Sequence record: NC_019526.1
Length of the DNA: 64,000 nucleotides
Direction: 5' to 3' (one strand)
A program made the position numbers and the translations under genes. Numbering within the stretch: the stretch's first letter is position 1; each line of letters opens with the position of its first letter. Below, one piece after another: positions 19,394 to 57,394 of this stretch. Below the pieces are notes generated by a model that saw nothing but the letters and a program-made list of their open reading frames with translations, did not search any database and was not told where the DNA came from.

Positions 19394-19395
19394 TA

Positions 19396-19432: not shown

Positions 19433-19462
19433 TATACATCCAAACAAAATAGGAATACTACA

Positions 19463-38648: not shown

Positions 38649-39074
38649 ATACTATATTGGACGATATGGTCATTATAGTAGACAATTTAATGGATATGGG
38701 TGATTCAGTACTGATAATAATGAATAGGAATTGATAAGAATAGTATAGTACTATTCAGTACTATTCAGAGTGAATCAGTACTATTAAGAATGATTAAGTA
38801 CTGATATGCCACTAAGTCCGTTTATAAAGTCGCACCCAGTGGGCTACATTTGTAACTATTCAGTACTTAATAATTCAACTCATCAATTATTACAAACCTA
38901 ACTATTTCAAATCTAATTACCCCATTAACTAAATCCCCAAATTATATATTAGCAAAAATCCCAGTACTAAATCAAGAAAAATCTGGATTGTCGATGAGAA
39001 AAAATCTGGATTTTAAAAATTTTGAAATGTCGTTCATAGTTCAGGAAAAAAATGAAATCATAACAAGAAAAGTG

Positions 39075-39103
39075 TTGACACGGACATACTGCCATTATAT
39101 AAT
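39075..39103 (+). promoter_or_regulatory. perfect consensus sigma70 promoter
   Basis: TTGACA-17-TATAAT. Confidence 0.85.
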
Positions 39104-39109
39104 GTAATC

Positions 39110-39590
39110 CTCAAGACGAGAGAATGTTCTCTCACAGAAAATGCGAAGAAGCCGAGTTTATCTGTCCCTGCGTTAGTGGGCTAACATTTGAATAGGACAA
39201 TACGTAGATGAGTGAAAAAGGTTCAAAGGGAAATATTTGATTCCCTGTAGTATAGTTAATGAGTTAGTACTGATTTAGATATAATCATTGAGTAGTACTA
39301 CTGTCGCAAAGGGAAACCTTTGGCTTCCATGGGGAGTGATGACAGAAGGGCATTATCCTCCATATAGAGTTACTGCGAATAACTCCGTAAGTTGGGTTGT
39401 GGCAAACCTCCTAAAATAGTGAATCTACAGTACTACTGATTGGTAGTACTGCTTTTAATTTAAAGTGTTTCTTTCCATAGAGAAAAGGTGCATGTAACTT
39501 GAACATGTGAACTACGGGAACAGTACTGAACAATTCCAGTACTGATTCCTCTCCAAATTTTGGATACAATAATGCTAGGCTTCAGTTAGT
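39110..39590 (+). ncRNA. candidate long structured ncRNA
   Basis: No ORF; many hairpins (CAAAGG-gaaa-CCTTTG, GAGTTA/TAACTC, CAGTACTAC/GTAGTACTG). Confidence 0.5.
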
Positions 39591-39596
39591 ACTGAG

Positions 39597-39715
39597 TGAG
39601 AATGATAATGATTCTCATTTGAATTGGATGAGAACGATTCTCATTTACTATTGCAAATGATAATAGATTGCATTTACGAATGGTTCTCATTCGCAGATGA
39701 TAATGATTCTTATTC
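39597..39715. promoter_or_regulatory. cluster of Fur-box-like sites
   Basis: GAGAATGATAATGATTCTC (16/19 to GATAATGATAATCATTATC) at 39598; 7-1-7 sites at 39629 and 39698; two weaker sites between. Confidence 0.75.
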
Positions 39716-39847
39716 AAAATTGATTTTTCCGATTTTTTCCATTAGTCACCCTTCAGCGTAGGGTTAATTTTTCCCCTGCCGAATCGGTTTTATATTTTCA
39801 AAATCTGGATTAATCATATCAGTACTAACCCAGATAAACAATACCCT

Positions 39848-39862
39848 TTTACAAATCTTTAC
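39848..39862. promoter_or_regulatory. CpxR-consensus direct repeat
   Basis: TTTAC-AAATC-TTTAC (GTAAA-N5-GTAAA on - strand); identical at 40220, 40833, 41067, 48856. Confidence 0.5.
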
Positions 39863-39889
39863 AAAAAGATTCTAAATGCGAATACAAAT

Positions 39890-39908
39890 GATAATGATTC
39901 TCATTTAC
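39890..39908. promoter_or_regulatory. Fur-box-like site
   Basis: GATAATGATTCTCATTTAC, 15/19. Confidence 0.7.
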
Positions 39909-40115
39909 AGTACTGAATACTTTTCCCCACGCCCTGGCGTCTCCGGTTCCTCCCGTCTATATAAACATTATACAGTACTGAAATATTAAGTCAATACTAT
40001 TTTTTCAAAAAGATTAAAATAAAATACTTGCAATCCTGATATTATTATATTATAATGTTTACAGTACTGAGAAAGTGCTTTTGCCAGCTAGGGTGCGGGG
40101 GAGTATGCGTTAAAT

Positions 40116-40134
40116 GAGAATGATAATCATTTAC
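40116..40134. promoter_or_regulatory. Fur-box-like site between convergent promoters
   Basis: GAGAATGATAATCATTTAC, 16/19. Confidence 0.75.
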
Positions 40135-40328
40135 AGTACTGGACGGATTTTCCCACCCTCGGGGGTCTCTTTTTGTCTATGTAGTAATTATACAGTACTG
40201 AGATACTATATCAAGTCTCTTTACAAATCTTTACAAATCACCCGGGGAGATTTTTCTTTACAATAAAAGTACTTGCATAATTCTTTCAGTACTGCTATTA
40301 TATATTCATACCAAACAGGAGAACTACC

Positions 40329-40499
40329 ATGAAATACGCATACTCTTATTTTATTGTGAACGGTGAACGTTTGACCATCGGCCAGGCAGCGGTAAAGCAT
40401 GAAATCATTTGCGATGATCTGGCGAAGATGCTACCAGGTGAAACGCAAGAGTTTTACAAAGGCTTTCAGAAAGTCACTGTGACCCGCTGCGAAGATTGA
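40329..40499 (+). CDS. hypothetical protein (56 aa)
   Basis: Own promoter, AGGAG SD. Confidence 0.7.
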   Translation: MKYAYSYFIVNGERLTIGQAAVKHEIICDDLAKMLPGETQEFYKGFQKVTVTRCED

Positions 40500-40562
40500 T
40501 CCAGTACTGGGGCAGCAATGCCCCTAAAACGTCCTGTAACGCATTGTAAGAGGTTTTAGAAT

Positions 40563-40790
40563 ATGGCTAGAGAAGTTAACGCAGGTGATATAAAGGCGGC
40601 TGTACTGCGTACACTGAAAGCATACGGCAGAAAGTTGAATGATCGCAACGTTCCCTATTATTTCCTTGCTGCTACTCATAAAATGGCAATCGCTGAGGCT
40701 CGCGGGTGGCTGAATGATCGCAGTACTGTAAAGAGTACCAGAACAAGAAACGCAATTGAGCGATGGATAAAAGAATTAAATCATTTCTAA
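40563..40790 (+). CDS. hypothetical basic protein
   Basis: GAGG SD. Confidence 0.65.
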   Translation: MAREVNAGDIKAAVLRTLKAYGRKLNDRNVPYYFLAATHKMAIAEARGWLNDRSTVKSTRTRNAIERWIKELNHF

Positions 40791-40949
40791 TAGTTCAGTA
40801 CTGAAATTATAAGGGGAGTTAATTAATTCCCCTTTACAAATCTTTACAAAAGAATTGTTGACATAGTATCCCAGTACTGGTATTATGTATTCATAGACAG
40901 AACAAGTCTTTGGCCCACCGGGTGCGGGGGAGTATCTATTAGATTGAAT

Positions 40950-40974
40950 GAGAATGATAATGATTCTCATTTAC
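40950..40974. promoter_or_regulatory. overlapping Fur-box-like sites between convergent promoters
   Basis: GAGAATGATAATGATTCTCATTTAC (16/19 and 15/19 registers). Confidence 0.75.
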
Positions 40975-41178
40975 TGTACTGAATATATTTCCGCACCCTT
41001 TTGGGCTTTTCGATTACTTTCTACTTGTTAATAAGTATACCATAATCAGTACTGAATGCAATGGTCTTTACAAATCTTTACAAAAGAAAATAATTATAAA
41101 AAGTACTGAAAAAGTACTTGACGTAATAATGTAGTACTGGCATAATACATCCATACCAAACAGAACGGAGTAACTATA

Positions 41179-41466
41179 ATGTTTAATGAAAATGATCATA
41201 TTGTTAAAGAGTTTTCTTTCAGTAAGCCTATCCATTTAGAAAACGGTGAAACGCTGGACAATAAATTTTATGGTAGTATTATTAAGCGTTATACATCGCG
41301 GAGTAGTACTGGAATTTTGTGGGAAGTGAATAAACAGTACAATGGTAATTCGCTGGTTGTCAATGAGTGGGAAAGTTATGCAGTAGCTGAAATGGATTTT
41401 TCTAACTTTATTACTGAATCTTTGAACGATGATATTTTTTACAAGTTCACGGCGGAAAGGGTTTAA
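41179..41466 (+). CDS. hypothetical protein
   Basis: Own promoter, GGAG SD. Confidence 0.75.
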   Translation: MFNENDHIVKEFSFSKPIHLENGETLDNKFYGSIIKRYTSRSSTGILWEVNKQYNGNSLVVNEWESYAVAEMDFSNFITESLNDDIFYKFTAERV

Positions 41467-41582
41467 AAAGTTTTAAAGAGTACTTGACAACATAAACCAG
41501 TACTGTATAATGTATTGCATAGAAAGGAGATTCCAGAATAATGGAATCTCCGATAAAACAAACTAATCAGGAGTTAATTACC

Positions 41583-42191
41583 ATGAACGTTATCGATACC
41601 ATCTATTCTAAATCTTTTATCGAACTGAATGAAGAGCAGAAAGAAAAAGCAATTGATATTATGCGGGAAATTGAAAATCAGGACACTACCCCTTATTGGT
41701 CAATTGATCTTGTTAACCAGATGAAAGAAAAATTAGTACAATATGGAATTGATGATTCTGAAATTTTGTGGTCTGGATTTTGTTCACAGGGAGACGGTGC
41801 AAGTATCAGCACTGAATCAATTAATGCTGAGATGTTTTTACGTAAGGTAAAAGCGTGGTCTAAATTTAAAGGCTTGCGTAAATTCATCTCCGAAGAAACT
41901 ATTTCTTTGAGTGTTCGCCGGGTGAGCCATCATTACTATCATGAATATTGTGTTAGTGGTAATGTTGAAATTGCTTATTGTGAAGATGTTACCGCCAAAC
42001 AAGAACAATTAGTGGACGATTTGCAAACTTTGATCACAAGTACTATTCGTGATTTGTCTCGTGAATTGTATAAAGATTTAGGGAATGAAAACGATTATCA
42101 AAATAGTGATGAAGCATTGATTGAATTGATTAATGCAAATGATTATAATTTCAAAGTTAATAGTACTGGTAACGTATTGGGGTTAGCGTAA
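41583..42191 (+). CDS. conserved acidic protein of the SGFxSQGDGA family
   Basis: F-x-EL...KEKAI, WSGFCSQGDGAS, HYYHEY, LYKDL..E.DY..SDEA; function unproven; track ATG 41541 lies in a 5' hairpin. Confidence 0.7.
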   Translation: MNVIDTIYSKSFIELNEEQKEKAIDIMREIENQDTTPYWSIDLVNQMKEKLVQYGIDDSEILWSGFCSQGDGASISTESINAEMFLRKVKAWSKFKGLRKFISEETISLSVRRVSHHYYHEYCVSGNVEIAYCEDVTAKQEQLVDDLQTLITSTIRDLSRELYKDLGNENDYQNSDEALIELINANDYNFKVNSTGNVLGLA

Positions 42192-42476
42192 TGACTAAAT
42201 TATATATTCGTTTCTGTTTTGCCTGGTACTTGTATAATCTGCAAAATGGTTATACAGTGAAATAATGCACTGATATACTGTAAAACGTCCTGTAAACGAT
42301 TATGGGACGTTTTAAGGAATATTAGTACAATGTTAGTACTGAATGATTTAAACGCCTTACAGTGGCTTACCGAGCGTTTAAAAAGTAATTGACGTAATAA
42401 TGTAGTACTGGCATAATTCATCTATACCAAACAACAAAGGGAATCAGTACTGATTCCCCTGTAAGGAGTAACCAAA

Positions 42477-42791
42477 ATGAGTACTAAAGAACTGAATGTA
42501 ACTACCAACACTTATAAGACGTTATGCGGTCGGTTGTTACGTGATTATTACACTGTAGAGATTGAAGAACGCGAATTACCCGAAGATAAACACTATTGGG
42601 AAAGTGGTGTTAGTCCTCTGCTACGGGTAACAACGTCTAAGCATGTTTTCTTTACTTCCCGCATTCATGTTAATAAGCGTGTTGAATTGACTTTCTCTTT
42701 CAGTGGTAGTTATAAAGATCATGAGATCTTGAATGATCGTATCGTTATTAATAAATTTATTCAAATGTATGGTGCGGATTCTTTACTTTAA
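42477..42791 (+). CDS. hypothetical protein
   Basis: Promoter-hairpin-AGGAG cassette. Confidence 0.75.
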   Translation: MSTKELNVTTNTYKTLCGRLLRDYYTVEIEERELPEDKHYWESGVSPLLRVTTSKHVFFTSRIHVNKRVELTFSFSGSYKDHEILNDRIVINKFIQMYGADSLL

Positions 42792-42877
42792 GTACTTGAC
42801 AATTCGATCCAGTACTGTATAATGTATTACATCAAAGGGGATACATAGTGTATCCCTGATATAAAGGAGTAGCGACT

Positions 42878-43237
42878 ATGCGAGCTTTTAACGTTTATAA
42901 GAATGACAAGAAAATTGATGTTGTTTATTATTCCGAAGTAATGACGGCAAAAGAAGTAACCGATTTGCTGAATAGCCGTGGTGAATACAACGGCGAAGTA
43001 AAAGCATTTCGGTCATTGAATAGTGCGAATATTCGCACAGTACTGAAAAATGCTAAAACTGTTTTATTCAATGATGACGAATATTTTAATAAAGATGTTA
43101 CGGGTATTAAAAACCTGGAAGATCTGAAAAGCCTTATTGGTATTAAAGGCAACGTATACAAAGTGGGGGAAGTCGGATCCCGCCATGAATATAAATTAGC
43201 CAATAGTGATTATAAATTTTCAATCCTGGTAATGTAA
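42878..43237 (+). CDS. hypothetical protein
   Basis: Promoter-hairpin-AGGAG cassette. Confidence 0.75.
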   Translation: MRAFNVYKNDKKIDVVYYSEVMTAKEVTDLLNSRGEYNGEVKAFRSLNSANIRTVLKNAKTVLFNDDEYFNKDVTGIKNLEDLKSLIGIKGNVYKVGEVGSRHEYKLANSDYKFSILVM

Positions 43238-43238
43238 T

Positions 43239-43442
43239 ATGAAAGTTTATATTTTGGAAGTGGAAGAATGTAATTCATATTCTTACAGTGGTACACTATC
43301 ACGCGTGGAGGCGGTATTTGCCAGCGAGAAAGAAGCCCACGCCGCTGGGGTTCAAAAAGTAAAAGAAGGCTATGAAGGTTATAGCGTCGATGCTTATGAT
43401 ATTCAGGGCGATCTTTCAGCACTTTTAAAGGAATTAAAATAA
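43239..43442 (+). CDS. hypothetical protein
   Basis: Packed + strand ORF. Confidence 0.7.
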   Translation: MKVYILEVEECNSYSYSGTLSRVEAVFASEKEAHAAGVQKVKEGYEGYSVDAYDIQGDLSALLKELK

Positions 43443-43657
43443 TGGAATATGAATTAATATATCACACTCGGTTATATGTTATTTTCTTTGAAATAACGTT
43501 ATGGGGAGTAAAGGCAACGATTTATAATAAAGACGTTGTCGACGATCAAGAATGGATCGTTGTTGCAGAAGATAAAACGCCTCATGATTCGTTAAGTACT
43601 GATTTTAAATTATGCCGTGAATTATTAAAGAGAATAAGAAAAGAGAATAATATATAA
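43442..43657 (+). CDS. hypothetical protein
   Basis: AAGGA SD, coupled. Confidence 0.7.
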   Translation: MEYELIYHTRLYVIFFEITLWGVKATIYNKDVVDDQEWIVVAEDKTPHDSLSTDFKLCRELLKRIRKENNI

Positions 43658-43690
43658 AACAAAGGGGATCGATTGATCCCCTTTGTTGTT
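43658..43690. terminator. bidirectional intrinsic terminator
   Basis: AACAAAGGGGATC-gatt-GATCCCCTTTGTT. Confidence 0.75.
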
Positions 43691-43849
43691 TCAGTACTGA
43701 ATTAATAATAGATACACTACGGCACCCTATGGGTTAGTGCCTTGTGTCCGGCTTATGTGGTTATTATGCCAGTACTGCGAACATAAGTCAATAGTTGATT
43801 TGTAAAGAAGTGTAAATGCACAGGAAGCATTGTAAGGCGTTAATCTGTT

Positions 43850-43857
43850 GCTGGTGG
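43850..43857 (+). other. Chi site (first of seven co-oriented)
   Basis: GCTGGTGG; also 45898, 50843, 52476, 54780, 56040, 57570. Confidence 0.85.
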
Positions 43858-44164
43858 CTGATAGTATAGAGTAGTGTTTTAGATTGATTGTAGGCCGTTG
43901 TAGGCGTTTATAGATAGTAAAGTACTGATAATGTTTAATGATCCTGGTATGTGCAAATTATTTTAATTTTTTTCGTATTGGGTATTGACGGATTATGTCA
44001 GTACTGGCATAATGTATCACATGAAGCGGCGAGATAGAAAATCATCTCAGTAGCTGGCCAGTAAAGCATACGAAGTCCTGGTGTCGCCTCAAACGGTTTT
44101 AGGTATCAAATAACACGTAACATCTAAACGTTGATGATACTGAAAACTAAAAAGAAAAAAGTAG

Positions 44165-44202
44165 TTGACAAGTACTAACGAGAATGAGATAATCTCTCTC
44201 GT
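44165..44202 (+). promoter_or_regulatory. promoter with operator-like palindrome over -10
   Basis: TTGACA-17-GATAAT; AACGAGA...TCTCGTT inverted repeat. Confidence 0.65.
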
Positions 44203-44246
44203 TGAAACAAACAAACAATCTTAATCAAAACTTAAAGGTGAATAAA

Positions 44247-44747
44247 ATGGCTAAACTGAATTCTGTGATCGTTGCTCTGCTGGCTGGTGATGTTGCTGCT
44301 CTGAATACTTCTTTCGCGTCGGTATCGATGGAAGATATGAAAACTGTTCGTAATAACTTTAACGAGTTTTACTCCAAGTTTAAAGCTGCTAATGAAGCTG
44401 CTGAAGCGGCGGCGAAAGAGCGTAAAGTACAGATCGAAACCGAAACGAAAGAACTGGTAGACGCCCTGGTAACTGCTGGCCTGGATCTGGAAATGGCCGC
44501 CGAAGTCGCCAGCCAGAAAATGGCGGTGAAATATCCCGAACTGGCTCCGAAGTCTGCAACTGGTAAAACCTGGTCGTTTGAAACCGTATTCGTTAACGTT
44601 GACGGTGAAAAACTGGAAATTGGCACCAAAGGCAACAAAGGCAGTATGAAAGCACTGGCGGCGGCACGCGAAGCAATTGCCGCAGGCAAATACAAAGATC
44701 GTGCTGAATGGATCGCCGCTCACGCCTGGACTGAAACCGAAGCGTAA
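44247..44747 (+). CDS. H-NS/StpA-like nucleoid-associated protein (divergent)
   Basis: SMEDM...EAAEAAAKERK...LVTAGLD matches the H-NS oligomerisation-domain pattern; strongly host-optimal, GC-rich codons. Confidence 0.55.
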   Translation: MAKLNSVIVALLAGDVAALNTSFASVSMEDMKTVRNNFNEFYSKFKAANEAAEAAAKERKVQIETETKELVDALVTAGLDLEMAAEVASQKMAVKYPELAPKSATGKTWSFETVFVNVDGEKLEIGTKGNKGSMKALAAAREAIAAGKYKDRAEWIAAHAWTETEA

Positions 44748-44768
44748 TAATTCAGTACTGTAATAATT

Positions 44769-44795
44769 AGCCTCCTGTAATTAGGAGGCTTTTTA
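44769..44795 (+). terminator. intrinsic terminator
   Basis: AGCCTCCT-gtaatt-AGGAGGCT then T run. Confidence 0.8.
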
Positions 44796-44826
44796 TTTTG
44801 TTCAAAAAAATATTTTAATTTATTTT

Positions 44827-45001
44827 TTGAACGGACTTCAAAAATCGGATATAATAATAAAGGGTGTTAATTACAGAGACCCCCATAGTGTTCGCTACGC
44901 TCACATAATGATCTTACTCGTTGCACTCGTAAGATCATTATCCAATCGGCCTTCGGCGATTTCTTTTTGATTTCCTACGGAAACCAAACGAAACCACCAG
45001 C
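44827..45001. other. promoter plus cluster of GNA-triloop hairpins (origin/pas-like)
   Basis: TTGAAC-17-TATAAT; - strand GC[GTA]GC, GT[GCA]AC, CC[GAA]GG, TTTCC[GTA]GGAAA; reverse Chi at 44994. Confidence 0.4.
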
Positions 45002-45397
45002 AAAGGCAGATCCCATTATTTGATTTAGTTAGTACTGCGATTAATTAGTAATTCATTGCACTACATAGCAATCAATTCCTTTTGTAATAGCTCACAGGAC
45101 GCAATAAGACGCGTTTAAATGACTTCCCTATGTAATGCCATTCCTTTTTAATAAGTCCTCTTAAAACGCGTTACAGTGCGTTATATGGCGTTTTTATAAT
45201 ACTCATCATTTCTTTTTCAAAAAGTACTTGCATTAATGATCCAGTACTGCAATAATGTACTCACTGAAACGCAGTAAGCGAAGTAAGTAAATGCAAATAA
45301 GTACTTGACAAAGTGTTGTAGTACTGGCATAATGAATACATCAAAACGAAATAGCAAAGGGATTCAGTACTGAATCCCTGTTAAGGAGAAAAACCAA

Positions 45398-45871
45398 ATG
45401 TTAAAACTTCATAAAGTACTTGATAACGCAGTTGTAACCGACTTTTTCCTGTCTCTTAACAACGAACCGAAAACAGCGAAGGAAATTGTTTTGAGTGGTT
45501 ACATCGCCAGCAAGTCAGAGATCGCACATTTGGAAAGTGCTTTCAAGTCCGGTGATGCATTATACAAAAAAATGCAAAATACCATCGAAGATTTGCAATA
45601 TATCAATTTACGTGATATTGTAGACAATAAATTGGATATTTCAGAAGAAGCACGCGAGAAGCTGGTAAGTAAATTATGTTACCGCTGCCGAACTGCAAAA
45701 TGGAATCGCATTCGTAGTATTATTACTTACGATTTAAGTAATATCGATTCCAAATCAATTCTTGAACGTATGTTATTAAATTTACAAAGCAATGAGTGGT
45801 TTTATACCGCCGCTCAATCTCATAGCGAAGAAATTGCATATATTCGTGATTATGTAATTTACAGCAAGTAA
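45398..45871 (+). CDS. hypothetical protein
   Basis: Promoter-hairpin-AGGAG cassette. Confidence 0.8.
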   Translation: MLKLHKVLDNAVVTDFFLSLNNEPKTAKEIVLSGYIASKSEIAHLESAFKSGDALYKKMQNTIEDLQYINLRDIVDNKLDISEEAREKLVSKLCYRCRTAKWNRIRSIITYDLSNIDSKSILERMLLNLQSNEWFYTAAQSHSEEIAYIRDYVIYSK

Positions 45872-45944
45872 TTAATAATTGATTAGCCATCATTAAAGCT
45901 GGTGGCTAATAGAATATTAATAACCTGTTAGGAGAATAATCTTT

Positions 45945-46214
45945 ATGAAAGGTATTAGTACTTTAATTGATAAAAACACTCATGTAAGACGTTCAATGAT
46001 TGCCGTATCACTGGCTAAAGTTGTTGCAAGTGGTTATCTGGTTTTTGTTGTAGATGGTAAATTGCAAGAGCGTTCAATTGCATTTAGTACTAAAGAAAAT
46101 TGCCGTTATATTGTATACAAGAAAGAAGCATACAAGATAGATTTACCAGCGAAACCGATCTCCGGTGGTTACAATGTTGAAAGTCTATATGAAAGGCCAC
46201 CGTATACTGCGTAG
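45945..46214 (+). CDS. hypothetical protein
   Basis: AGGAG SD. Confidence 0.75.
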   Translation: MKGISTLIDKNTHVRRSMIAVSLAKVVASGYLVFVVDGKLQERSIAFSTKENCRYIVYKKEAYKIDLPAKPISGGYNVESLYERPPYTA

Positions 46215-46291
46215 AATCGATTTTGAGCGGCTTTAATGAAATATAGGGTATCAGTACTGATACCCGTTTAAAACAGTGTAGGAGTGATTCT

Positions 46292-46462
46292 GTGAAGCGT
46301 GAACAAGCTTTATTGACGCCTGAAGAGGCAAGACGCTATGAAATGTTTTCAAACCAGGAAACGATCAAAGCGGCACAATATAACCCGGTTGCTTGTACAG
46401 TACAAAGAAAGAATTTTGTACTAAATGAAGTAGAAAGTATTATCAAATCAAATAAGGAGTAA
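46292..46462 (+). CDS. hypothetical protein (56 aa)
   Basis: AGGAG SD, GTG start. Confidence 0.5.
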   Translation: MKREQALLTPEEARRYEMFSNQETIKAAQYNPVACTVQRKNFVLNEVESIIKSNKE

Positions 46463-46468
46463 CAAGCT

Positions 46469-46741
46469 ATGCAAAATAACCGTCCAATGATCCGCAACAT
46501 GCTTTTCGTATTCCAGAAAAAAGTTAATGTAACTTCGGTAAATGGTGAACGTAAATTAAATGCAGCATTCGCCAAATATACCCAAAGCAAAAACATCCAT
46601 TACTTTTATCTTACTCTGAATGAGTTTAATGATCTGGTAAAAGAAATGTTTGTCAGTACTGAAATTGTTGCACCTGTAAGTACTGACACCATTTTGAAAG
46701 AGTGGGAAAGTTTTTACAAAAGTTCTGTTGTAATCGCTTGA
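46469..46741 (+). CDS. hypothetical protein
   Basis: AGGAG SD. Confidence 0.75.
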   Translation: MQNNRPMIRNMLFVFQKKVNVTSVNGERKLNAAFAKYTQSKNIHYFYLTLNEFNDLVKEMFVSTEIVAPVSTDTILKEWESFYKSSVVIA

Positions 46742-46795
46742 CAACATAATCCAGTACTGGCATAATAACTACATAGACCACAAAGGAGAAACATA

Positions 46796-46975
46796 ATGGA
46801 AACTGTAATTGCTACTACCAAAATCAATGGACTGGATAATGAAGTTTCATTGATCCATGACGGTAACGAATATGTTGTGTCATATGGTATCTATAAAACC
46901 TATCATGACGCTATCAATGAAGCTTTTGAGGATTATATGAAAGCAATTGAAATTGCTTATGATGATTATCGTTGA
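46796..46975 (+). CDS. small acidic protein (59 aa)
   Basis: Own promoter, AGGAG SD. Confidence 0.7.
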   Translation: METVIATTKINGLDNEVSLIHDGNEYVVSYGIYKTYHDAINEAFEDYMKAIEIAYDDYR

Positions 46976-47058
46976 AAGTACTTGCTTTAATCATTCAGTA
47001 CTGTATAATGTATTACATCAAAGGGAATGAATGATTCATTCCCACATAACCAGGAGTA

Positions 47059-47418
47059 ATGACTATGTTTGATAAAGTTTTATTTTCTGATAACACCTCT
47101 GAAACCGAGATCCCGGAAGCGGTAAAAGCTTTTGCTCAATTAGTTGCCCAGCGTCAAACTGATAATTACGACGGGCCTTATTCTTTTCTTACTGAGATTA
47201 GTAAAGGCAAAAAGTTTATTAAACTTATTCGCCGCGAGAAGTGGAAAGATAACGGACAATTAACAGGCGGATCGGTATTTGCCTTTATTGATCCCGATGG
47301 TAACATTTACAAATCAGCGACAGCTAAAGCACCAGCTAAAGGCATTCGCGGAAATGTTAACATCAACGGCGGCGGTGATGCAATCGGGCGTGATGGTTAT
47401 ATTCGTTACTTTCGTTAA
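47059..47418 (+). CDS. hypothetical phage protein
   Basis: GKKFIKL...SVFAFID...GNIYK.A..KAPAKG motif. Confidence 0.8.
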   Translation: MTMFDKVLFSDNTSETEIPEAVKAFAQLVAQRQTDNYDGPYSFLTEISKGKKFIKLIRREKWKDNGQLTGGSVFAFIDPDGNIYKSATAKAPAKGIRGNVNINGGGDAIGRDGYIRYFR

Positions 47419-47507
47419 TTGACAAATCTTTACAAATCCAGGGGTTGACTTCGGTCGCCCCTTTTGTTATTATATATTCATACCACAGAGCAAGTGGTTT
47501 AGCCCAC

Positions 47508-47625
47508 AGGGTGCCGAGATGTATCTATAGTTTAATGATTTTAAGTACTGAAAAATAATTATAAAAAGTACTTGCTAGACGTGAATTCTTTTAAGAATTC
47601 ACTTGTATTTGTGATTCAGTACTGC
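47508..47625 (+). repeat. 118-bp direct repeat, copy 1
   Basis: Identical to 57395-57513 except a 1-nt indel. Confidence 0.9.
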
Positions 47626-47661
47626 TATTATATATTCATACCAATTAAGGAGATTATCCAA

Positions 47662-47820
47662 ATGAATACACAATATGTGCCGGTGATGAATATCACTATA
47701 GGAAATGGAAAAGGTATGCATCGATTCAGTACTACAAAGAGTTATACTCAGCGTACATTAGAATCATGTGCAATTACTAAATGGCAAATCAAACATTACT
47801 TCACTACGGACAAGAAATAA
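47662..47820 (+). CDS. hypothetical protein (52 aa)
   Basis: AGGAG SD; the track start lies in the promoter. Confidence 0.65.
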   Translation: MNTQYVPVMNITIGNGKGMHRFSTTKSYTQRTLESCAITKWQIKHYFTTDKK

Positions 47821-47932
47821 TGATTGTAAAAGTATTGACAACGATAATTCAGTACTGTATTATAACTGGTGTAGCGTTCGTGTTAGCAGTTGCTATAGTG
47901 TTTAGTACTGTAATTGTATTGGGGAACATATC

Positions 47933-48238
47933 ATGATTAAAAATATTGAAGCATTCGATAAAGCATATCTTTACACCAGTACTTTTCGGAATAGCGATGG
48001 CGATCCGGTTGAATTTAAAAATGTAGTACTGATCCGGCCTGGTTTTGATATTATTCATATCTGGAATTCATGGAATCAAGCGGCGGGCAATCGCTATACT
48101 ATTGATAAAGAAATTTCAATAGAAGAAGCGTTAAAACTTCCATCATTGCCGGATCGTTTATCCCTGGCTAGTCGTGTGGAACTGGTGGGTGATACCGCAC
48201 AATATATCACGCATGAGTATGAATTTAAGTACTTATAA
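47933..48238 (+). CDS. hypothetical protein
   Basis: GGGG SD. Confidence 0.7.
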   Translation: MIKNIEAFDKAYLYTSTFRNSDGDPVEFKNVVLIRPGFDIIHIWNSWNQAAGNRYTIDKEISIEEALKLPSLPDRLSLASRVELVGDTAQYITHEYEFKYL

Positions 48239-48324
48239 GTGTTGACAACATAATTCAGTACTGTATAATGTATTACATCAAAGGGGATACATAGTGTATC
48301 CCTGAATTAACAGGAGTAACCCAT

Positions 48325-48573
48325 ATGTCTAGTATCGTTATCAATGAAACCTTATTATCTGTTACTTATGACAATGACAGTGTTTTTCCGGGTAAAGATT
48401 ATGGGGACGAAATTCCCGTAAAAGTTGAACTCGATCAAAGTGTCGGTAATGCCGACGATATTAAACGCACTATGGTGGTTAAAATTGGCGATATCACTTT
48501 ATTGCCCATTGATATTGATTATATCAAGTTTATGATTGATCGTGCAAATACCATTGCCGAAACCTTCAAATAA
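48325..48573 (+). CDS. hypothetical acidic protein
   Basis: Promoter-hairpin-AGGAG cassette. Confidence 0.75.
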   Translation: MSSIVINETLLSVTYDNDSVFPGKDYGDEIPVKVELDQSVGNADDIKRTMVVKIGDITLLPIDIDYIKFMIDRANTIAETFK

Positions 48574-48656
48574 GTACTTGACAACTGGTTTCAGTACTGT
48601 ATAATGTTTATCAAAGGGGATACATAGTGTATCCCTGATTTAAAGGAGATTCTAAA

Positions 48657-48845
48657 ATGGCAGTAGTATACGGTTATATCAGCAACTATGATTTGACTTT
48701 CCGGGAAGTCGGTACTGAATTAGGTGCAAAGAATGCAGCAACGCGAAACGGCTCGACCCGCGTAGGATATCGCAGTAGTATTAATAATATGTATATTGAA
48801 ACGCATATCCGCAACGATAAAAAGGGTAAATGGGAAAAAGTGTAA
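48657..48845 (+). CDS. hypothetical protein
   Basis: Promoter-hairpin-AGGAG cassette. Confidence 0.75.
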   Translation: MAVVYGYISNYDLTFREVGTELGAKNAATRNGSTRVGYRSSINNMYIETHIRNDKKGKWEKV

Positions 48846-49235
48846 TCTAATTCCATTTACAAATCTTTACAAAACCAGTACTTGATTTAATTATTGAGTA
48901 CTGGTATTATATATTCATTGGCAGATAAGCCGCAGCCCACAGGGTGCCGAGGTGTATCTATAGTTTATTGAATTGAAGTACAGAAAAATATTTCTTGCAT
49001 AATTCATTTCTTATGTTATAATAGTAATCACATAAATTAATTGGAGTGAACAAAAATGTTATTAGATTGGCTCAATACTTTATCCCCTGCTGCTGGCCGA
49101 CGCTGGGCTATCGGTTCGTCGGTTGCCATCGTTGTAGGCGTCATTGTACTTTTAGTGATGATTTTCTAAAAAGTACTTGCTTTAATGATCCAGTACTGTA
49201 TAATGTACTTATACCAAATAACAGGAGTAAAACCG

Positions 49236-49553
49236 ATGAAAGATGTAACTTTACCAGTAGTTCAAACTAACTTTGAAAACCAATTCCTGGCCGAAGTATT
49301 CAAGATTGATAATGGCGTTGTATCAATCAATTACGGTTTCAATAGCGGCGGTTATGAAAAATTCATTTATTTCGTTACTGCCGATGGTGGATGCCTGGCA
49401 ATTGATACGGTACTGAATGAATTCAGTAAAGTAGATTTTAATGATGATAATGATCCTCAGTGGTATATTGTCGGCTATGACGTGAACTATGAAGATGAAG
49501 ATCTTTATGATGATCATACTAATCAAAAAATTGAATCCGCTTATGGGGAATAA
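49236..49553 (+). CDS. acidic hypothetical phage protein
   Basis: AGGAG SD; DPQW...VNYED...IESAYG motif. Confidence 0.75.
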   Translation: MKDVTLPVVQTNFENQFLAEVFKIDNGVVSINYGFNSGGYEKFIYFVTADGGCLAIDTVLNEFSKVDFNDDNDPQWYIVGYDVNYEDEDLYDDHTNQKIESAYGE

Positions 49554-49853
49554 AAATGATCATCGTACTATCAGAGAAAGAAAAGAAATTAATTCTTTCA
49601 GTACTGAAAGAATATCCCAGAAATATGCGGGAGCCGTTTGAAACAAATGGTGAATTCGAAGAGCATTTAAACGATATCGATTTATTGATATCCAAGATTG
49701 AATCACAATAGTGATGTACTGTAAAACGTCCTGTAATCGATTATGGGACGTTTTAAGGAATAGCACTATGATTTATTCAGTACTGTAAAAAAACGCTTGA
49801 AAATTGATTCCAGTACTGTATAGCTGCATTACTGTTTAATGTGGGGTATTAAA

Positions 49854-50069
49854 ATGAAATATGTTATGGTAGATGAAATTACTAGCACGAAACCCAGTGA
49901 TGATTATAACAAATGGCTTGCCCGTAGCAATAAATGTATTATTCCGCACGATGACCGCGTATATCATTGTTATGAATGCGGGGAGATTATACCAAATGTA
50001 CTGGATCATTCAATCTTTACATATGATGATCTTAATTACGCTCATTCAAGATGCCTTGATAAAAAATAG
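49854..50069 (+). CDS. small Cys/His protein
   Basis: CYEC...HSRC. Confidence 0.65.
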   Translation: MKYVMVDEITSTKPSDDYNKWLARSNKCIIPHDDRVYHCYECGEIIPNVLDHSIFTYDDLNYAHSRCLDKK

Positions 50070-50144
50070 TTGACAGTATCATATCAGTACTGTATAATGC
50101 TTTACATAGGAAAATTATTCTCCCCATTATCAGGAGTAAAGAAT

Positions 50145-50372
50145 ATGTTTTACATCGGTACTGTTAAAAAAAATTCAAATGTAATTGAAGCATCATTGAT
50201 TTGTACTAACAATGAAGTGGCTGGCTATGATTATGCTCAAGAACGATTCATGAAACACTATACCGGTGATGATTCAGTGTCATTCGATTTTGAACGTATC
50301 GGTGATGGTGTTACAATTATGAAATTTGAAGATCTCCCTGAAATCGATTTTGATTTTGTCGTTACACTGTAA
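50145..50372 (+). CDS. small acidic protein
   Basis: AGGAG SD. Confidence 0.7.
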   Translation: MFYIGTVKKNSNVIEASLICTNNEVAGYDYAQERFMKHYTGDDSVSFDFERIGDGVTIMKFEDLPEIDFDFVVTL

Positions 50373-50471
50373 AAAAAGTACTTGCATAATTCTTTCAGTA
50401 CTGTATACTGTACTTATACCAAACAAAAGCAAATGGAATCAGTACTGATTCCCTGTAAAGGAGATAGACCA

Positions 50472-50723
50472 ATGTCAGATCGTATCACTCGCAAAATGGT
50501 AGCAGATAAAGTTGCTGGGCTGAATCTTGCTATTGACCGTCGTGGATTGCCTGAAAAATATCAGGTAGTACTGGAAGATGGCAAATTCAATATTGAATTA
50601 CAGCCGTCTCATGTTTATACTAAACCAACGACAGTACAAGGGAATTTAAGTACACGTGAAGCATATCTTTACCTCAAAGGTATGTTTGAGATCCTTCTCA
50701 ATAATGTACCATATAAAGATTAA
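50472..50723 (+). CDS. hypothetical protein
   Basis: Promoter-hairpin-AGGAG cassette. Confidence 0.75.
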   Translation: MSDRITRKMVADKVAGLNLAIDRRGLPEKYQVVLEDGKFNIELQPSHVYTKPTTVQGNLSTREAYLYLKGMFEILLNNVPYKD

Positions 50724-50726
50724 AGA

Positions 50727-50757
50727 AAAAGGGGAGACAATGAGTCTCCCTTTTTTG
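50727..50757. terminator. bidirectional intrinsic terminator
   Basis: GGGAGAC-aatga-GTCTCCC flanked by A and T runs. Confidence 0.75.
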
Positions 50758-50949
50758 TATTCAGTACTAAATTATATAGATACATTTATGCACCCTGTGG
50801 GTTAGTAGCTTGTTCTGCTTTATGTAGTAATTATATGATAAAGCTGGTGGCTTGTCAACACTTATTTTAAAATAAAAAGTACTGAATAGTACTTGCAAAA
50901 AGTATTCAGTACTGTATAATGTTTGTATTGAGATTAAGGAGTTCTTACT

Positions 50950-51507
50950 ATGTTAATCAAAATGTATCACGGTTCTAATAATTTTGATCATCGCTGGGGA
51001 TATCTGGGTGGAAAACCTGGCAATTTTCATATGGGTTTTGGACTATATCTAACTAACTCTTATCGCTGGGCTGATAATTATGGGCGACGTCATTATGAGT
51101 TAGATTTAGATATTTGTAGTACTGGTGCCGCACATAATGTATGGATTCCTACTAAACACTTTATGGAATTCATAAGAGTATATTGTACTAAAAAGTTTTA
51201 TACAATGTGCTGTAAAGAATTTAAAGACCGTGAATCTTTGAATGTAGAACGCGTTGAATTGCTTATTATCAATATGGAAAGGCACGTTACGAAAATCGCT
51301 AAACCATTTGCTGAATTCGTCGCTGCCTGGGGTTGTACGCATAGCATTGAAATATCCGGTAACTATGGTGGTGTTTGCGTGCGGCTTTATGATTTCAGTA
51401 TTATAAAGAATTGTATCATAAGCCAGGAAACGCAGGATTTTTATTATCCAGATGAATTGACAAGATATCCTCAAAAAACTTGTATTAATGATTCAGTACT
51501 GATATAA
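50950..51507 (+). CDS. ADP-ribosyltransferase-fold protein (H-Y type)
   Basis: MYHGS ... MGFGLYLT ... WADNYG. Confidence 0.55.
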   Translation: MLIKMYHGSNNFDHRWGYLGGKPGNFHMGFGLYLTNSYRWADNYGRRHYELDLDICSTGAAHNVWIPTKHFMEFIRVYCTKKFYTMCCKEFKDRESLNVERVELLIINMERHVTKIAKPFAEFVAAWGCTHSIEISGNYGGVCVRLYDFSIIKNCIISQETQDFYYPDELTRYPQKTCINDSVLI

Positions 51508-51752
51508 TGAATTAAATTAATCAGGAGGAATTATCTTAAATGAATAACCGTCAATTGATGATCGATGCATCTCGTTTTCGTTCAAAAGAAGAAAAGAGAA
51601 GTTGCATTAAATGGGTTTTGTCAACTTTCATTATTGGATTACTTATTGTTGCTTTTGTTTATAGTTAGTACTTGACAATATAATCCAGTACTGTATAATG
51701 TTTATCAAAGGGAATGAATTATTCATTCCCGATTAATCAAAGGAGTTTTGCC

Positions 51753-51977
51753 ATGATCTATATTATCAAAGTATCCCCGACCGTAGGTAAATCAGAAGTT
51801 GTAGCTGTTATCACTTCCCTGGAAGCGAAAGATCTTCATACCCCGTTTAATGTATGGGTGGAGGATAATTTCGGACAATTCAGTACTGCTGAATATATCG
51901 AACAATTCGCTGTCCCGGACACTGGTAAAATCAAAGTGGATCGTGTCCTGGATTTTGATAACAGTAATTACTTTTAA
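51753..51977 (+). CDS. hypothetical protein
   Basis: Promoter-hairpin-AGGAG cassette. Confidence 0.7.
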   Translation: MIYIIKVSPTVGKSEVVAVITSLEAKDLHTPFNVWVEDNFGQFSTAEYIEQFAVPDTGKIKVDRVLDFDNSNYF

Positions 51978-52063
51978 AAACGTTTGACAACTGATTTCAG
52001 TACTGTATAATGTTTATCAAAGGGAATGAATTATTCATTCCCGATTAATCAAAGGGGTTTATC

Positions 52064-52210
52064 ATGAAAGAGTATATCTTTGAAGTAACTTTCACATTTG
52101 GCCCGCACCAACTGATCCGGTCTTCTGGCTACAACCGCGAACAAGCATTCAGCAACCTTCGCCGTATGTACCCCAATGTCGTGACCTGGGTCAAGTGTGA
52201 AGAAGCTTAA
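52064..52210 (+). CDS. hypothetical protein (48 aa)
   Basis: Duplicate cassette, AGGGG SD. Confidence 0.65.
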   Translation: MKEYIFEVTFTFGPHQLIRSSGYNREQAFSNLRRMYPNVVTWVKCEEA

Positions 52211-52290
52211 AATAATTAGTCAGTACTATTGACAACGGGTGATAGTACTGCTATAATTATTTTAACTTATACGGAATGGAGTTAAAACAA

Positions 52291-52527
52291 ATGTTCAGTG
52301 TCAGCAAACAAGGCGACAAATTTCTGGTTCAATACCATCATTTTGATCTGGTATACACTCAGCCAGATTGTGTATTCAGTACTCAGGAAGGTGCCGAAAA
52401 GCACAAAAAAGCCTTGATCGAAAATAGCAACAGTGGTACATTAGATTTCATCCAACAGTACTGGAATGAATCTAAGCTGGTGGACGGTTATTCCAACACA
52501 GTTTATTATGTAGGTATCACTGATTAA
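52291..52527 (+). CDS. hypothetical protein
   Basis: GGAG SD. Confidence 0.7.
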   Translation: MFSVSKQGDKFLVQYHHFDLVYTQPDCVFSTQEGAEKHKKALIENSNSGTLDFIQQYWNESKLVDGYSNTVYYVGITD

Positions 52528-52629
52528 TCGGGAGTACTGTTAATGTATATGCCAATTATCATACCGTTAGCAGTACTGTTAATCGCCGCCGTTATCTGCG
52601 AACAATATCATTTGTTAGGAATGTAAACT

Positions 52630-52800
52630 ATGATTCAATGTGAATTGTCAGTACTGATCACGCTGTTCTATATGTTGGGGCAAAAGAAACAAGATATTTC
52701 TGGTGATAATGCATTATTGTATCAATCATTAGACCAATGGCAACGATCTGAATTAAGCAATGCATGGGCGAAAGGTTACAACGATAGTACTGCAAAATAA
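52630..52800 (+). CDS. hypothetical protein (56 aa)
   Basis: AGGA SD. Confidence 0.55.
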   Translation: MIQCELSVLITLFYMLGQKKQDISGDNALLYQSLDQWQRSELSNAWAKGYNDSTAK

Positions 52801-52987
52801 TTTAAAAAAGGGGTTGACTTACGCCAGCCCTTTTGTTATCATTAGTACATAGCAAGAACAATGCTCAAGCCCACAGGGTGCGGAGGTGTATCTATAGTTT
52901 ATGTTGGTCTGAATCATTAATTTTCTTGACAATTGGTTTAGTACTGGATATAATAGCCGCCATTGAATACAGGAGGATTTTAAAAAA

Positions 52988-53254
52988 ATGGCCTATCATA
53001 CACCACATAGACATTTCATTGATAAACGCGGTATGGCTTTTAAAGCAATGAGTGACAATCGTAACACACAAATGTACTTTAAAGATATGACGTTAGAAGA
53101 AGCTATTGAAGCTGTAAGGAATGATCGTAAGCTTTCCAAGAAAGTTGCATCAGTACTTAATGCTTTTTGGTTTGAACGTACTACCAACAAAGAATACAAA
53201 GAAAAGATGATTGCACTTGGTAAAGTAGTAAGAGAAGAAAAATTATATCTTTAA
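52988..53254 (+). CDS. hypothetical basic protein
   Basis: AGGAGG SD. Confidence 0.75.
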   Translation: MAYHTPHRHFIDKRGMAFKAMSDNRNTQMYFKDMTLEEAIEAVRNDRKLSKKVASVLNAFWFERTTNKEYKEKMIALGKVVREEKLYL

Positions 53255-53505
53255 GTACTTGACTATGTGATTCAGTACTGCTATTATATATTCATACCAA
53301 TTAAGGAGATAGACCAAATGAAACAAGCTAAATTTAATTCAGAAATTAAAGCAGCAAAAGCACACAAAGTACAGTTAGTAGTACTGGTTATTGTATCAAT
53401 CTTTTTGCTGTGCAACATCGGCTAAAATAATTATTACAGTACTATTGACAACCAACGATAGTACTGGTATAATTACTTTACCAAATAAAAAAGGAGTAAC
53501 CAAAA

Positions 53506-53781
53506 ATGCGGATTAAACTTACCAGTGATGAGATTCATTCAGTACTGACTACCAATATGCAGGACTGGAAAAAGTACGCTGATATCGAAGAAGTCCAGGA
53601 ACTCAATGATGATTTGAGTGTAGATGAAATTATCACTATTTGCTCATCTCAATTCTTTGATGATATCAATGATGAAGAGCAAGATGTATTTGATATCATG
53701 GAAAAACATTTTATTGCGTATGATGTTTTCCCGTATACTCGCCAGGCTTATATTCTTATTCACAACATTTATAACAAATAA
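53506..53781 (+). CDS. highly acidic small protein
   Basis: About 20 D/E vs 7 K/R in 91 aa; AGGAG SD. Confidence 0.75.
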   Translation: MRIKLTSDEIHSVLTTNMQDWKKYADIEEVQELNDDLSVDEIITICSSQFFDDINDEEQDVFDIMEKHFIAYDVFPYTRQAYILIHNIYNK

Positions 53782-53793
53782 GGAATAATAATC

Positions 53794-54159
53794 ATGGAAA
53801 AAGAATTTAAAATCAAATACAATATCAGTACCGATGGCGGTTTTGAAGTACCAGAAGAAGATCAAGAACGTCTTAATGATGTTATTATGATTGACATTTC
53901 AAATAAAATCATTCAAGGCTACCGCGAAGGTGAATTGTGTGAATCGTTGATGGATCAATTCGATGAAGTGGAAACGTTTTATCGTGGCTGGTGGAGTATC
54001 GAAGAAGTTCACAAAGTACACGAATACCGTGTATTCTGGATTAATGGCGTTAATGATATCGAAGATATCATTGTAAAAGAAAGTAGTGAATCCGCCGCCA
54101 TTCAGTACTTTAAAGATCACTACCCCAACAAACGTTATCACCATTTAGAAAAAATTTAA
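53794..54159 (+). CDS. acidic hypothetical protein
   Basis: AAGGA SD. Confidence 0.75.
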   Translation: MEKEFKIKYNISTDGGFEVPEEDQERLNDVIMIDISNKIIQGYREGELCESLMDQFDEVETFYRGWWSIEEVHKVHEYRVFWINGVNDIEDIIVKESSESAAIQYFKDHYPNKRYHHLEKI

Positions 54160-54246
54160 AAAGTAATTGACAACATAATCCAGTACTGATATATTAATAC
54201 GCATAGGGGCAAACAACTTGCCCCACTAAACAAAAGGAACTACCAA

Positions 54247-54603
54247 ATGATTACTAAATTCTACGCTACTCGTGAACAGGCTCGGATCGTCGCTCGTGAA
54301 GAAGGCGAAACCTTCAAAGATATGGGTAAAGATTCCCCTGCTGGTCAACGCTGGGCAGTACTGTTCCGCGAGGTCAAAGACCTGGTAGAAAACGCTAAAG
54401 CCGTTGAAATGAACGTTCCCACCAAAGAAGATAAAGAACTGACTGATGCCCTCGCTGCTGCATTCTCCGCGATGGATAAAGCCGCAGCGGTAGTACTGAA
54501 AGTACCGGAATTTGTTACCAGAAAAGTGCATTCAGTACTACAAAATAAATTCAACGGTAAACAGGTTCAAGTGTTTACTAAACGTAAAATTCCGGTCATG
54601 TAA
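54247..54603 (+). CDS. hypothetical phage protein with host-optimal codons
   Basis: FYATREQAR...KDMG...GQRWAV. Confidence 0.8.
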   Translation: MITKFYATREQARIVAREEGETFKDMGKDSPAGQRWAVLFREVKDLVENAKAVEMNVPTKEDKELTDALAAAFSAMDKAAAVVLKVPEFVTRKVHSVLQNKFNGKQVQVFTKRKIPVM

Positions 54604-54707
54604 AATCTGACTATTACAGTACTAACAAAGGGGCTTCAATGCCCCTTTAAACGTCCTGTAAGCCATTCTAAGAGGTTTTACATGAAAAGGTACAACTACA
54701 CAAAGGA

Positions 54708-54929
54708 GTGATGAAAGTTCATTATAATGCCCCGCAACGCATTATAGATAGAGCCATTGAACTAGCCAATCAATACCTAGCTGGTGGATTAACTCCCAGG
54801 AAGTTAAGCAACGGGAAGTTATATGTAATCAACGTTGATACTAATAATCGTATAGTAATCAAAGGTGAAAGCATATCACTGTATGAACATCAGCAGTATA
54901 ACAAGAAAGTAAAAAATATTAGTAGATAA
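54708..54929 (+). CDS. hypothetical protein (possible ParE/RelE-like small fold, unverified)
   Basis: AGGAG SD. Confidence 0.6.
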   Translation: MMKVHYNAPQRIIDRAIELANQYLAGGLTPRKLSNGKLYVINVDTNNRIVIKGESISLYEHQQYNKKVKNISR

Positions 54930-55008
54930 GTGTTGACAACTGATTTCAGTACTGCCATAATGTATACATACAAGGCAATACCGCCTAATAACATAGGAGT
55001 AACTGAAA

Positions 55009-55431: not shown

Positions 55432-55614
55432 AAATAAACATAATAAACAAAAAAGGGGGTTGACACAGGTCAGCCCTTTTGCTATTATTAATATCAAGAA
55501 AACAAGCTAACCCACAGGGTGCATAAATGTATCTATAATTTATTAAAGAATTTTAGTACTTGACAACGTAGTACAGCAGTACTAAAATATCTACATACAA
55601 AGGAGATTACCAAA

Positions 55615-56199: not shown

Positions 56200-56264
56200 T
56201 TTCAGTACTGCTATAGTACTTTCACAGGGGAGATAATCTCCCCAATCACAAAGGAGATTTTACC

Positions 56265-56627: not shown

Positions 56628-56707
56628 GTATTGACAAGTAATTCCAGTACTGGCATAATGTATTTCAAGGAGGTAATAACACCTCCTACCTTCAAGGAGT
56701 AGTGACT

Positions 56708-56944: not shown

Positions 56945-57033
56945 TTTAAAAAGTACTGGACAATACAATCCAGTACTGTATAATGTTTTGCATAGGGAGA
57001 GATAATCTCTCCCACTAAAGGAGAATACCGAAA

Positions 57034-57315: not shown

Positions 57316-57394
57316 TCTTTACAAATATGGGGGTTGACTAATGTCAGCCCTTTTGGTATTATATATTCAATCCAGCGAAATGGTCTAACCCTCA

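Follow-up and report, generated by a model that had tools for sequence, protein, structure and literature searches.

A conserved tandem 10-bp repeat at immediate-early non-coding promoters of Klebsiella jumbo phage RaK2 as a candidate operator for a host OmpR-family regulator

The stretch of DNA analyzed here (the window, 64,000 nucleotides) corresponds to bases 186001–250000 of the 346-kb genome of the Klebsiella jumbo phage vB_KleM_RaK2 (NC_019526, 100% identity). It contains a tandem TTTACAAA box, a near-invariant 20-base repeat that is present in RaK2 in seven copies. Each copy is located at a fixed distance from the -35 element of a sigma70-type promoter, and each of these promoters serves a cassette that lacks an open reading frame (ORF). 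The box is conserved in related phages and, among the promoters of the early region that were checked, the full 20-mer is restricted to those of cassettes. That a protein binds the box, which protein this would be and in which direction it would act are inferences. We tentatively favor a reading in which the box would be an operator for a host regulator of the OmpR family, occupying positions -60 to -41 in some of the immediate-early non-coding promoters, and we give this reading somewhat less than an even chance.

The initial annotation had listed five exact copies of the 15-mer TTTACAAATCTTTAC (at 39848, 40220, 40833, 41067 and 48856), a copy with one mismatch at 47419 and the sequence GTAAAGAAGTGTAAA at 43802, all of which are present. 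Within two mismatches, the 15-mer occurs seven times in the window, compared with 0.9 expected occurrences, and exact GTAAA-N5-GTAAA occurs six times, compared with 0.66 expected; no shuffled sequence reached either count. In the whole 346-kb genome, TTTAC-N5-TTTAC is found eight times on both strands, and seven of these eight sites are clustered within 9 kb (window 39848–48870). When the seven copies are aligned, positions 1–18 are almost invariant, with AAA at positions 16–18, and position 19 is A or T. The unit is therefore 20 bp long and consists of two tandem 10-mers, TTTACAAATC and TTTACAAAWN, and in copy b both halves are identical. Outside this unit (the upstream 30 bases, the 5-bp linker and the sequence that follows), the pairwise identity of the copies is ∼30%, compared with 94% across the 15-mer and 75% across positions 16–20. 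The boxes and two single half-sites are as follows:

Box a, 39848..39867 (+): TTTACAAATC followed by TTTACAAAAA; inverted relative to the adjoining promoter.
Box b, 40220..40239 (+): perfect tandem, TTTACAAATC followed by TTTACAAATC; inverted relative to the leftward promoter P40214.
Box c, 40833..40852 (+): TTTACAAATC followed by TTTACAAAAG; also located 3′ of the ORF325 terminator hairpin.
Box d, 41067..41086 (+): TTTACAAATC followed by TTTACAAAAG; inverted relative to the leftward promoter P41061.
Box g, 43797..43816 (-): TTTACACTTC and TTTACAAATC, on the minus strand.
Box e, 47419..47438 (+): TTGACAAATC followed by TTTACAAATC; one mismatch in the core.
Box f, 48856..48875 (+): TTTACAAATC followed by TTTACAAAAC.
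Single half-site, 40257..40266 (+): TTTACAATAA, before the -35 TTGCAT (40273) of the ORF324 promoter.
Single half-site, 57318..57327 (+): TTTACAAATA, before the -35 TTGACT (57334) of a further cassette promoter.

The position of the box relative to the promoters is equally regular. The initial annotation had placed the 15-mers 10–11 bp upstream of a same-strand -35 or 5–6 bp upstream of a leftward -35, and had placed the half-sites at 40257 and 57318 beside -35 elements as well. When the distances were recomputed, they all agreed. The same-strand copies c, e, f and g lie 10, 11, 11 and 10 bp before TTGACA, TTGACT, TTGATT and TTGACT, respectively, for the inverted copies a, b and d the gaps to the leftward elements TTGTTT, TTGATA and TTGCAT measure 6, 5 and 5 bp, and each half-site lies 11 bp before a -35. 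Measured from the 20-mer, the promoter-near edge is 5–6 bp from the -35 in all seven copies, whichever way the box points, and the same holds for the 10-mers of both half-sites, so the 20-mer fills roughly -60 to -41 in either orientation. With ∼45 promoters in 19 kb, random placement would satisfy the 5–6-bp condition in ∼0.5% of cases. Boxes b and d are also located 36–39 bp upstream of rightward ORF promoters, at a distance that is not constant. The seven boxed promoters are as follows:

Promoter of box a, 39813..39841 (-): -35 TTGTTT (39841–39836), 17-bp spacer and TG-extended -10 TATGAT (39818–39813), with the box 6 bp away; it reads into a divergent cassette and Fur-like boxes.
Promoter of box b, 40187..40214 (-): TTGATA-16-TATAAT, with the box 5 bp away; cassette-like RNA (CCCCGAGGGTGG) running into a Fur-like box.
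Promoter of box c, 40858..40886 (+): TTGACA-17-TATTAT, 5 bp after the 20-mer; cassette with CCCACCGGGTGC at 40914.
Promoter of box d, 41034..41061 (-): TTGCAT-16-TATACT, with the box 5 bp away; cassette (CCAAAAGGGTGC at 41004) convergent with that of box c.
Promoter of box g, 43763..43791 (-): TTGACT-17-CATAAT, 5 bp after the 20-mer; cassette (CCCATAGGGTGC at 43733).
Promoter of box e, 47445..47473 (+): TTGACT-17-TATTAT, 6 bp after the 20-mer, with the -35 within a terminator-like hairpin; cassette (47503).
Promoter of box f, 48882..48910 (+): TTGATT-17-TATTAT, 6 bp after the 20-mer; cassette (48936), a module that Asteriusvirus phages also carry.

The initial annotation held that most of the boxes serve ORF-less cassettes, which proved to be an understatement, as all seven boxed promoters do, and the promoter of the 57318 half-site also starts such a cassette. 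The cassettes of the boxed promoters contain an invariant core, in which CCCAYNGGGTGC is followed by six bases and GTATCTAT, or divergent forms of it in the zone of the Fur-like boxes. Approximately six other cassette promoters are without the box and have A-tracts in its place, and none of the ∼35 ORF promoters that were checked has a box at the corresponding distance.

The box is strictly conserved among the closest relatives of RaK2. In the orthologous 15-mers of K64-1, KP13-7, Muenster and RCIP0023, there are no substitutions at 360 positions, and the flanks differ by 2–4%; orthologues of copy b vary at positions 18–19. KP13-7 is without boxes a and b, and in its copy f the upstream flank is unrelated from the box edge onward, which indicates that the box travels with the promoter. 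In the Escherichia coli Asteriusvirus phages Ec-M-J and 121Q, each terminal repeat contains a single exact copy, which lies 11 bp upstream of TTGACT and is followed by the same cassette, and ∼30 cross-genus alignments start at the first base of the box. Apart from 121Q, the stretches listed from a 17-mer scan of viral contigs (80 of 99 matching stretches) were chance matches in genes or in unrelated uncultured viruses. The matches listed in a corresponding scan of bacterial genomes were scattered over phyla that are not related to one another, and none of them marked a locus conserved in Klebsiella or E. coli. Several of the unrelated uncultured viral contigs (L029, L031, L056, L059, L096 and L037) contain iteron-like arrays of 10–11-bp CTTTACAAA or GTAAAG repeats, and these arrays include the same 17-mer. 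In the part of KP13-7 (L003, 12001–13600) that corresponds to window 39600–40800, the annotated genes differ from those of RaK2 and include a 528-bp ORF that is not annotated in RaK2.

In the genome, the last late-type gene, ORF322, ends at window position 38600 and is followed by a gene-poor stretch and then by a dense run of small ORFs. In the sister phage Muenster, a direct terminal repeat of 20 kb was predicted with PhageTerm, and it starts ∼790 bp before the point homologous to window position 39600. In a related Asteriusvirus, terminal repeats of ∼20 kb were confirmed by restriction digests (PMC13070987). This placement puts the boxes ∼1–10 kb from the probable left physical end, in DNA that is probably the first to enter the cell and that the host sigma70 polymerase would read. 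The early region contains some 45 strong sigma70-type promoters of stereotyped form, in which AAAGTAC-TTGACA is followed by ∼11 bases and then by CAGTACTG and TATAAT. The RaK2 genome paper makes no mention of promoters. AGTACT is built into the early promoters twice, in AAAGTAC-TTGACA and in the CAGTACTG directly before the -10. This hexamer occurs 937 times in the 346-kb genome (∼118 expected by base composition) and peaks at 52–69 per 10 kb in the genome bins from 220 to 250 kb (window 34000–64000), which include the early region. Among public runs, this DNA was present only in metagenomes and metatranscriptomes stored at contig level. Four of these runs, aligned to 6,000 bases, gave scattered contigs without starts or ends, which are unsuited to showing expression.

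The cassettes themselves form a family in which a sigma70 promoter is followed by a short hairpin and then by CCCAYNGGGTGC-N6-GTATCTAT. The hairpin stems differ between copies (e.g. GAC/GTC, CCAC/GTGG and AGCA/TGCT). RaK2 contains ∼13 copies (window 38843–57400), and E. coli phage Ec-M-J and Salmonella phage Munch contain ∼10 each; the cassettes span positions 1111–20099 in sequence L006 and 1003–20321 in L007. The family has no match in Rfam, and Rfam and tRNA scans of the whole window gave no matches. The consensus RNA fold of 15 cassettes reached -5 kcal/mol, with no compensatory pairs in the invariant core. Some cassettes are arranged as convergent pairs, the transcripts of which would overlap at their 3′ ends (window 40028–40214 and 40858–41061; 3530/3598 in L006), and the RaK2 pairs cross a central Fur-like palindrome. 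Between window positions 39598 and 40974, there are five matches with at most three mismatches to the Fur-box consensus GATAATGATAATCATTATC, compared with 0.13 expected, and these Fur-like boxes sit between convergent cassette promoters, beside boxes a–d. In several cassette promoters, a hairpin that is rich in GC and resembles a terminator encloses the -35 (e.g. GGGG-TTGACTTCGGTC-GCCCC, with TTTTG and the -10 after it; window 47440–47473, 52814–52842, 55460–55488 and 57334–57362), so that one sequence would act as both terminator and promoter.

The initial annotation had recognized the CpxR consensus in the repeat and proposed envelope-stress (Cpx) input as one possibility. The match to the CpxR consensus GTAAA-N5-GTAAA (PMC3158067, PMC7083825; spacers of 4–8 in the literature) stands, with six copies identical at 10 of 10 positions and one at 9 of 10. 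It does not distinguish CpxR from other regulators, since the box also fits RstA at 8 of 8 core positions and OmpR at 10 of 12. As all three candidates fit to a similar degree, the sequence by itself cannot pick CpxR, and envelope-stress input into the boxed promoters is a hypothesis. The resemblance to CpxR boxes such as those of E. coli cpxP and Yersinia ppiA consists in two identical direct-repeat pentamers with a 5-bp spacer upstream of a sigma70 promoter. In the E. coli genome, the cpxP site reads TTTACGTTGTTTTAC in the cpxP sense (TTTAC-N5-TTTAC) and ends ∼8 bp before the inferred -35, compared with 10–11 bp in RaK2, where the 15-mer occupies approximately -60 to -46; the arrangement is similar, but the helical phase differs. 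Natural CpxR sites are usually imperfect (e.g. 8 of 10 at fabA and fabB), with varied spacers and weak -35 boxes, whereas the RaK2 sites, in the DNA of a virulent phage, have a constant spacer, near-consensus promoters and an offset larger by 2–3 bp.

RstA binds tandem half-sites head to tail at the box TACA-N6-TACA, with the extended consensus TACATNTNGTTACA (PMC4117788). The RaK2 sequence TACAAATCTTTACA matches the core of this box completely and the extended consensus at 10 of 12 positions, differing from the E. coli and Klebsiella pneumoniae RstA box at extended-consensus positions 5 and 9. The K. pneumoniae homologues of proposed E. coli RstA targets are reported to be without the classic box (PMC4117788), and we found no data linking RstA to phages. 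In the case of OmpR, for which the consensus is GTTACA-N4-GTTACA (bioRxiv 10.1101/2020.05.11.089920), the RaK2 TTTACA-N4-TTTACA preserves the conserved AC in both halves. The OmpR sites C1–C3 of ompC and F1–F3 of ompF are likewise 20-bp sites built from two 10-bp half-sites, many of which start with TTTAC (C1, TTTACATTTT...; F1, TTTACTTTTG...), with half-sites C1a and F1a reading TTTAC in the same sense as in RaK2, and the proximal site of ompC and ompF ends a few bp before the -35. However, OmpR promoters have three or four adjacent sites and a weak -35, whereas RaK2 has a single 20-mer in either orientation, with T in place of the leading G. An array of three or more adjacent sites reaching the -35 was not found in RaK2; there is one 20-mer per promoter, and a third half-site occurs only in region b. 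At the feo operon, sites for RstA and OmpR are combined with regulation by Fur, and boxes a–d of RaK2 similarly flank Fur-like palindromes.

The initial annotation had also allowed for another OmpR-family factor or a phage factor. The OmpR-family part of this alternative, in the form of a dimeric regulator of OmpR/PhoB type, fits the 10-bp period of the direct repeat, its strict conservation, its constant placement at -60 to -41 and its occurrence in both orientations. The phage part does not hold for this family, as a search with PF00486 (Trans_reg_C) at E ≤ 1 gave no matches in the six frames of the RaK2 genome, compared with matches in 12 of 14 control genomes. An OmpR-family regulator would therefore have to be that of the host. 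When the box was compared by eye with consensus sequences, it did not fit sites for Fis, IHF, DnaA, PhoP, ArcA, PhoB or H-NS. We found no literature linking CpxR to phage early promoters and no earlier description of this element.

Several observations weigh against an operator for a host OmpR-family regulator. The boxed promoters have near-consensus -35 and -10 hexamers, most with an extended -10, and should therefore not need an activator. The same-strand boxed promoters belong mostly to one subtype, TATTAT with ATATTCAT, so part of the pattern could stem from co-duplication. The spacer is identical in six of the seven copies, although the CpxR consensus does not require this, and an AT-rich 10-bp tandem repeat would contain TTTAC by chance with a few-percent probability. 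No excess of the box over a reversed-pattern control was found in Mimasvirus (GAP32 and CBB), Salmonella phage Munch or Erwinia phage Hallingskeid; the hosts have the same regulators, and Munch, at least, retains the cassette family.

Alternatively, the box could be the site of a sequence-specific protein outside the OmpR family, either an early or virion-borne phage protein or another host factor, which would switch the cassette promoters on or off as infection proceeds. The conservation reaches beyond the CpxR core into the spacer and positions 16–18, the box is limited to Alcyoneusvirus and Asteriusvirus while the host regulators are universal in enterobacteria, and small uncharacterized early proteins are encoded around the boxes. 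Yet 10-bp repeats in head-to-tail order are characteristic of response regulators, the sites of phage repressors are usually palindromic, immediate-early promoters fire ahead of phage protein synthesis, no candidate protein was found, and the phage is without an OmpR-type domain. One protein, ORF325, was considered as a sigma-4-like binder (the Muenster record cites HHpred hits to sigma factors) and rejected: it has no Pfam or PDB sequence match, its single-sequence AlphaFold model (pLDDT 79) is a plain three-helix bundle without a helix-turn-helix or sigma-4 match (best folds MIT-like, E > 0.9), and its homologues are found only in Alcyoneusvirus and Yersinia phage JC221 and not in Asteriusvirus. 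We consider a non-OmpR-family binder rather unlikely. We are equally doubtful that the box acts as an UP-like element, in which the A-tracts of the 10-mers would dock the alpha C-terminal domains of the host polymerase and strengthen the promoters without a regulator. The box does occupy the UP-element window (-60 to -41), and it resembles the UP elements known from strong sigma70 promoters (Estrem et al. 1998, cited in PMC5259590) in its window (-59 to -38), its AT-richness and an above-background score. The boxed upstream regions match 7–10 of the 14 specified UP consensus positions (mean 8.1), compared with means of 7.9 for the other early promoters and 5.5 for the background, and the unboxed cassette promoters have A-tracts such as TTTAAAAAGTAC at the same place. 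UP-like elements were also predicted at RpoD-type promoters of related phages in the CBB paper (PMC5259590). UP elements are, however, degenerate A/T tracts, whereas the box, which only some of the promoters have, is a specific, invariant 17–18-mer with fixed C residues that has been retained in seven paralogues, in four sister phages and in a second genus, and that is used in both orientations at the same edge distance. Its UP score is no better than that of the varied unboxed promoters, and because these reach the same score with varied sequences, the invariance of the box needs a further constraint.

The least probable explanation, to which we assign only a slight chance, is that the box has no function of its own and is either a passenger in a promoter/terminator module spread by duplication and recombination, like the PeSL (promoter early stem-loop) modules of T4-like phages, or a pair of vestigial T4-type -35 hexamers. 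Shuffling of conserved promoter-terminator modules is known from T4-type phages, in which the early -35 has the consensus TTTACW (PMC4122927), which the box resembles. RaK2 shares with the T4-like phages highly stereotyped early promoters beside stem-loops in a hyperplastic early region, and the common -10 subtype and the break in KP13-7 homology at the left edge of box f would also suit such a module. This is the one breakpoint of its kind, with boxes a and b missing from KP13-7, and boxes c and e alone have a stem-loop beside them. What defines a PeSL is a promoter with a stem-loop and not a tandem 10-mer 5–6 bp upstream of the -35, whereas the RaK2 box lies outside the promoter core in both orientations. 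The box is also 94% identical among copies while the flanks and the linker to the -35 are at background identity, the three inverted copies keep the edge distance, and the orthologous 15-mers are unchanged throughout. When the box was examined as a set of overlapping promoters, no consistent -10 was found 16–18 bp after either TTTACA, with weak candidates only at 41067 and 48866 (box c was inspected by eye).

In the mechanism that we propose for a host OmpR-family regulator, a winged-helix response regulator from the OmpR/PhoB family would bind as a dimer to the two head-to-tail 10-bp half-sites (TTTACAAATC and TTTACAAAWN), with host CpxR, RstA or OmpR as the candidates. At the seven sigma70 immediate-early promoters, the dimer would sit at -60 to -41 in either orientation, where it could contact the alpha C-terminal domain or sigma region 4 of RNA polymerase and thereby tune transcription of a subset of the ORF-less cassette RNAs. 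The production of these RNAs would thus be coupled to the envelope, osmotic or acid state of the host as the first DNA enters. A broader and more doubtful proposal is that this jumbo phage, although strictly lytic, presents host stress regulators with perfect-consensus sites (the CpxR/RstA/OmpR-type box together with the Fur-like boxes) within the first 2–10 kb injected. Host envelope and iron signaling might then decide which immediate-early non-coding RNAs are made, or the replicating DNA, with two terminal-repeat copies per genome, might serve as a decoy that titrates the regulators from host promoters.

Three of the small ORFs in the early region gave domain matches. ORF328 (42477–42788, +) is a clear member of DUF7300 (E = 3e-27), and ORF330 matches DUF7336 weakly. 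ORF332 (44247–44744, +) matches the H-NS N-terminal domain weakly (PF22470, E = 1.7e-4, short of the curated cut-off), and the homologue in Muenster carries the annotation of a putative DNA-binding protein.

In virulent phages, early promoters are generally regarded as switches that are constitutive and independent of the host. If the immediate-early non-coding RNA promoters of RaK2, a phage of therapeutic class for Klebsiella, are subject to a host two-component regulator, the outcome of infection would depend on the envelope, osmotic or acid state of the host. Because the same box is present in E. coli Asteriusvirus phages, the idea is testable in K-12. If true, it would offer a way into the function of the ORF-less cassettes, whose conservation extends across Rak2-like jumbo phages, and provide a natural example of a phage that uses, or sequesters, the stress regulators of its host.

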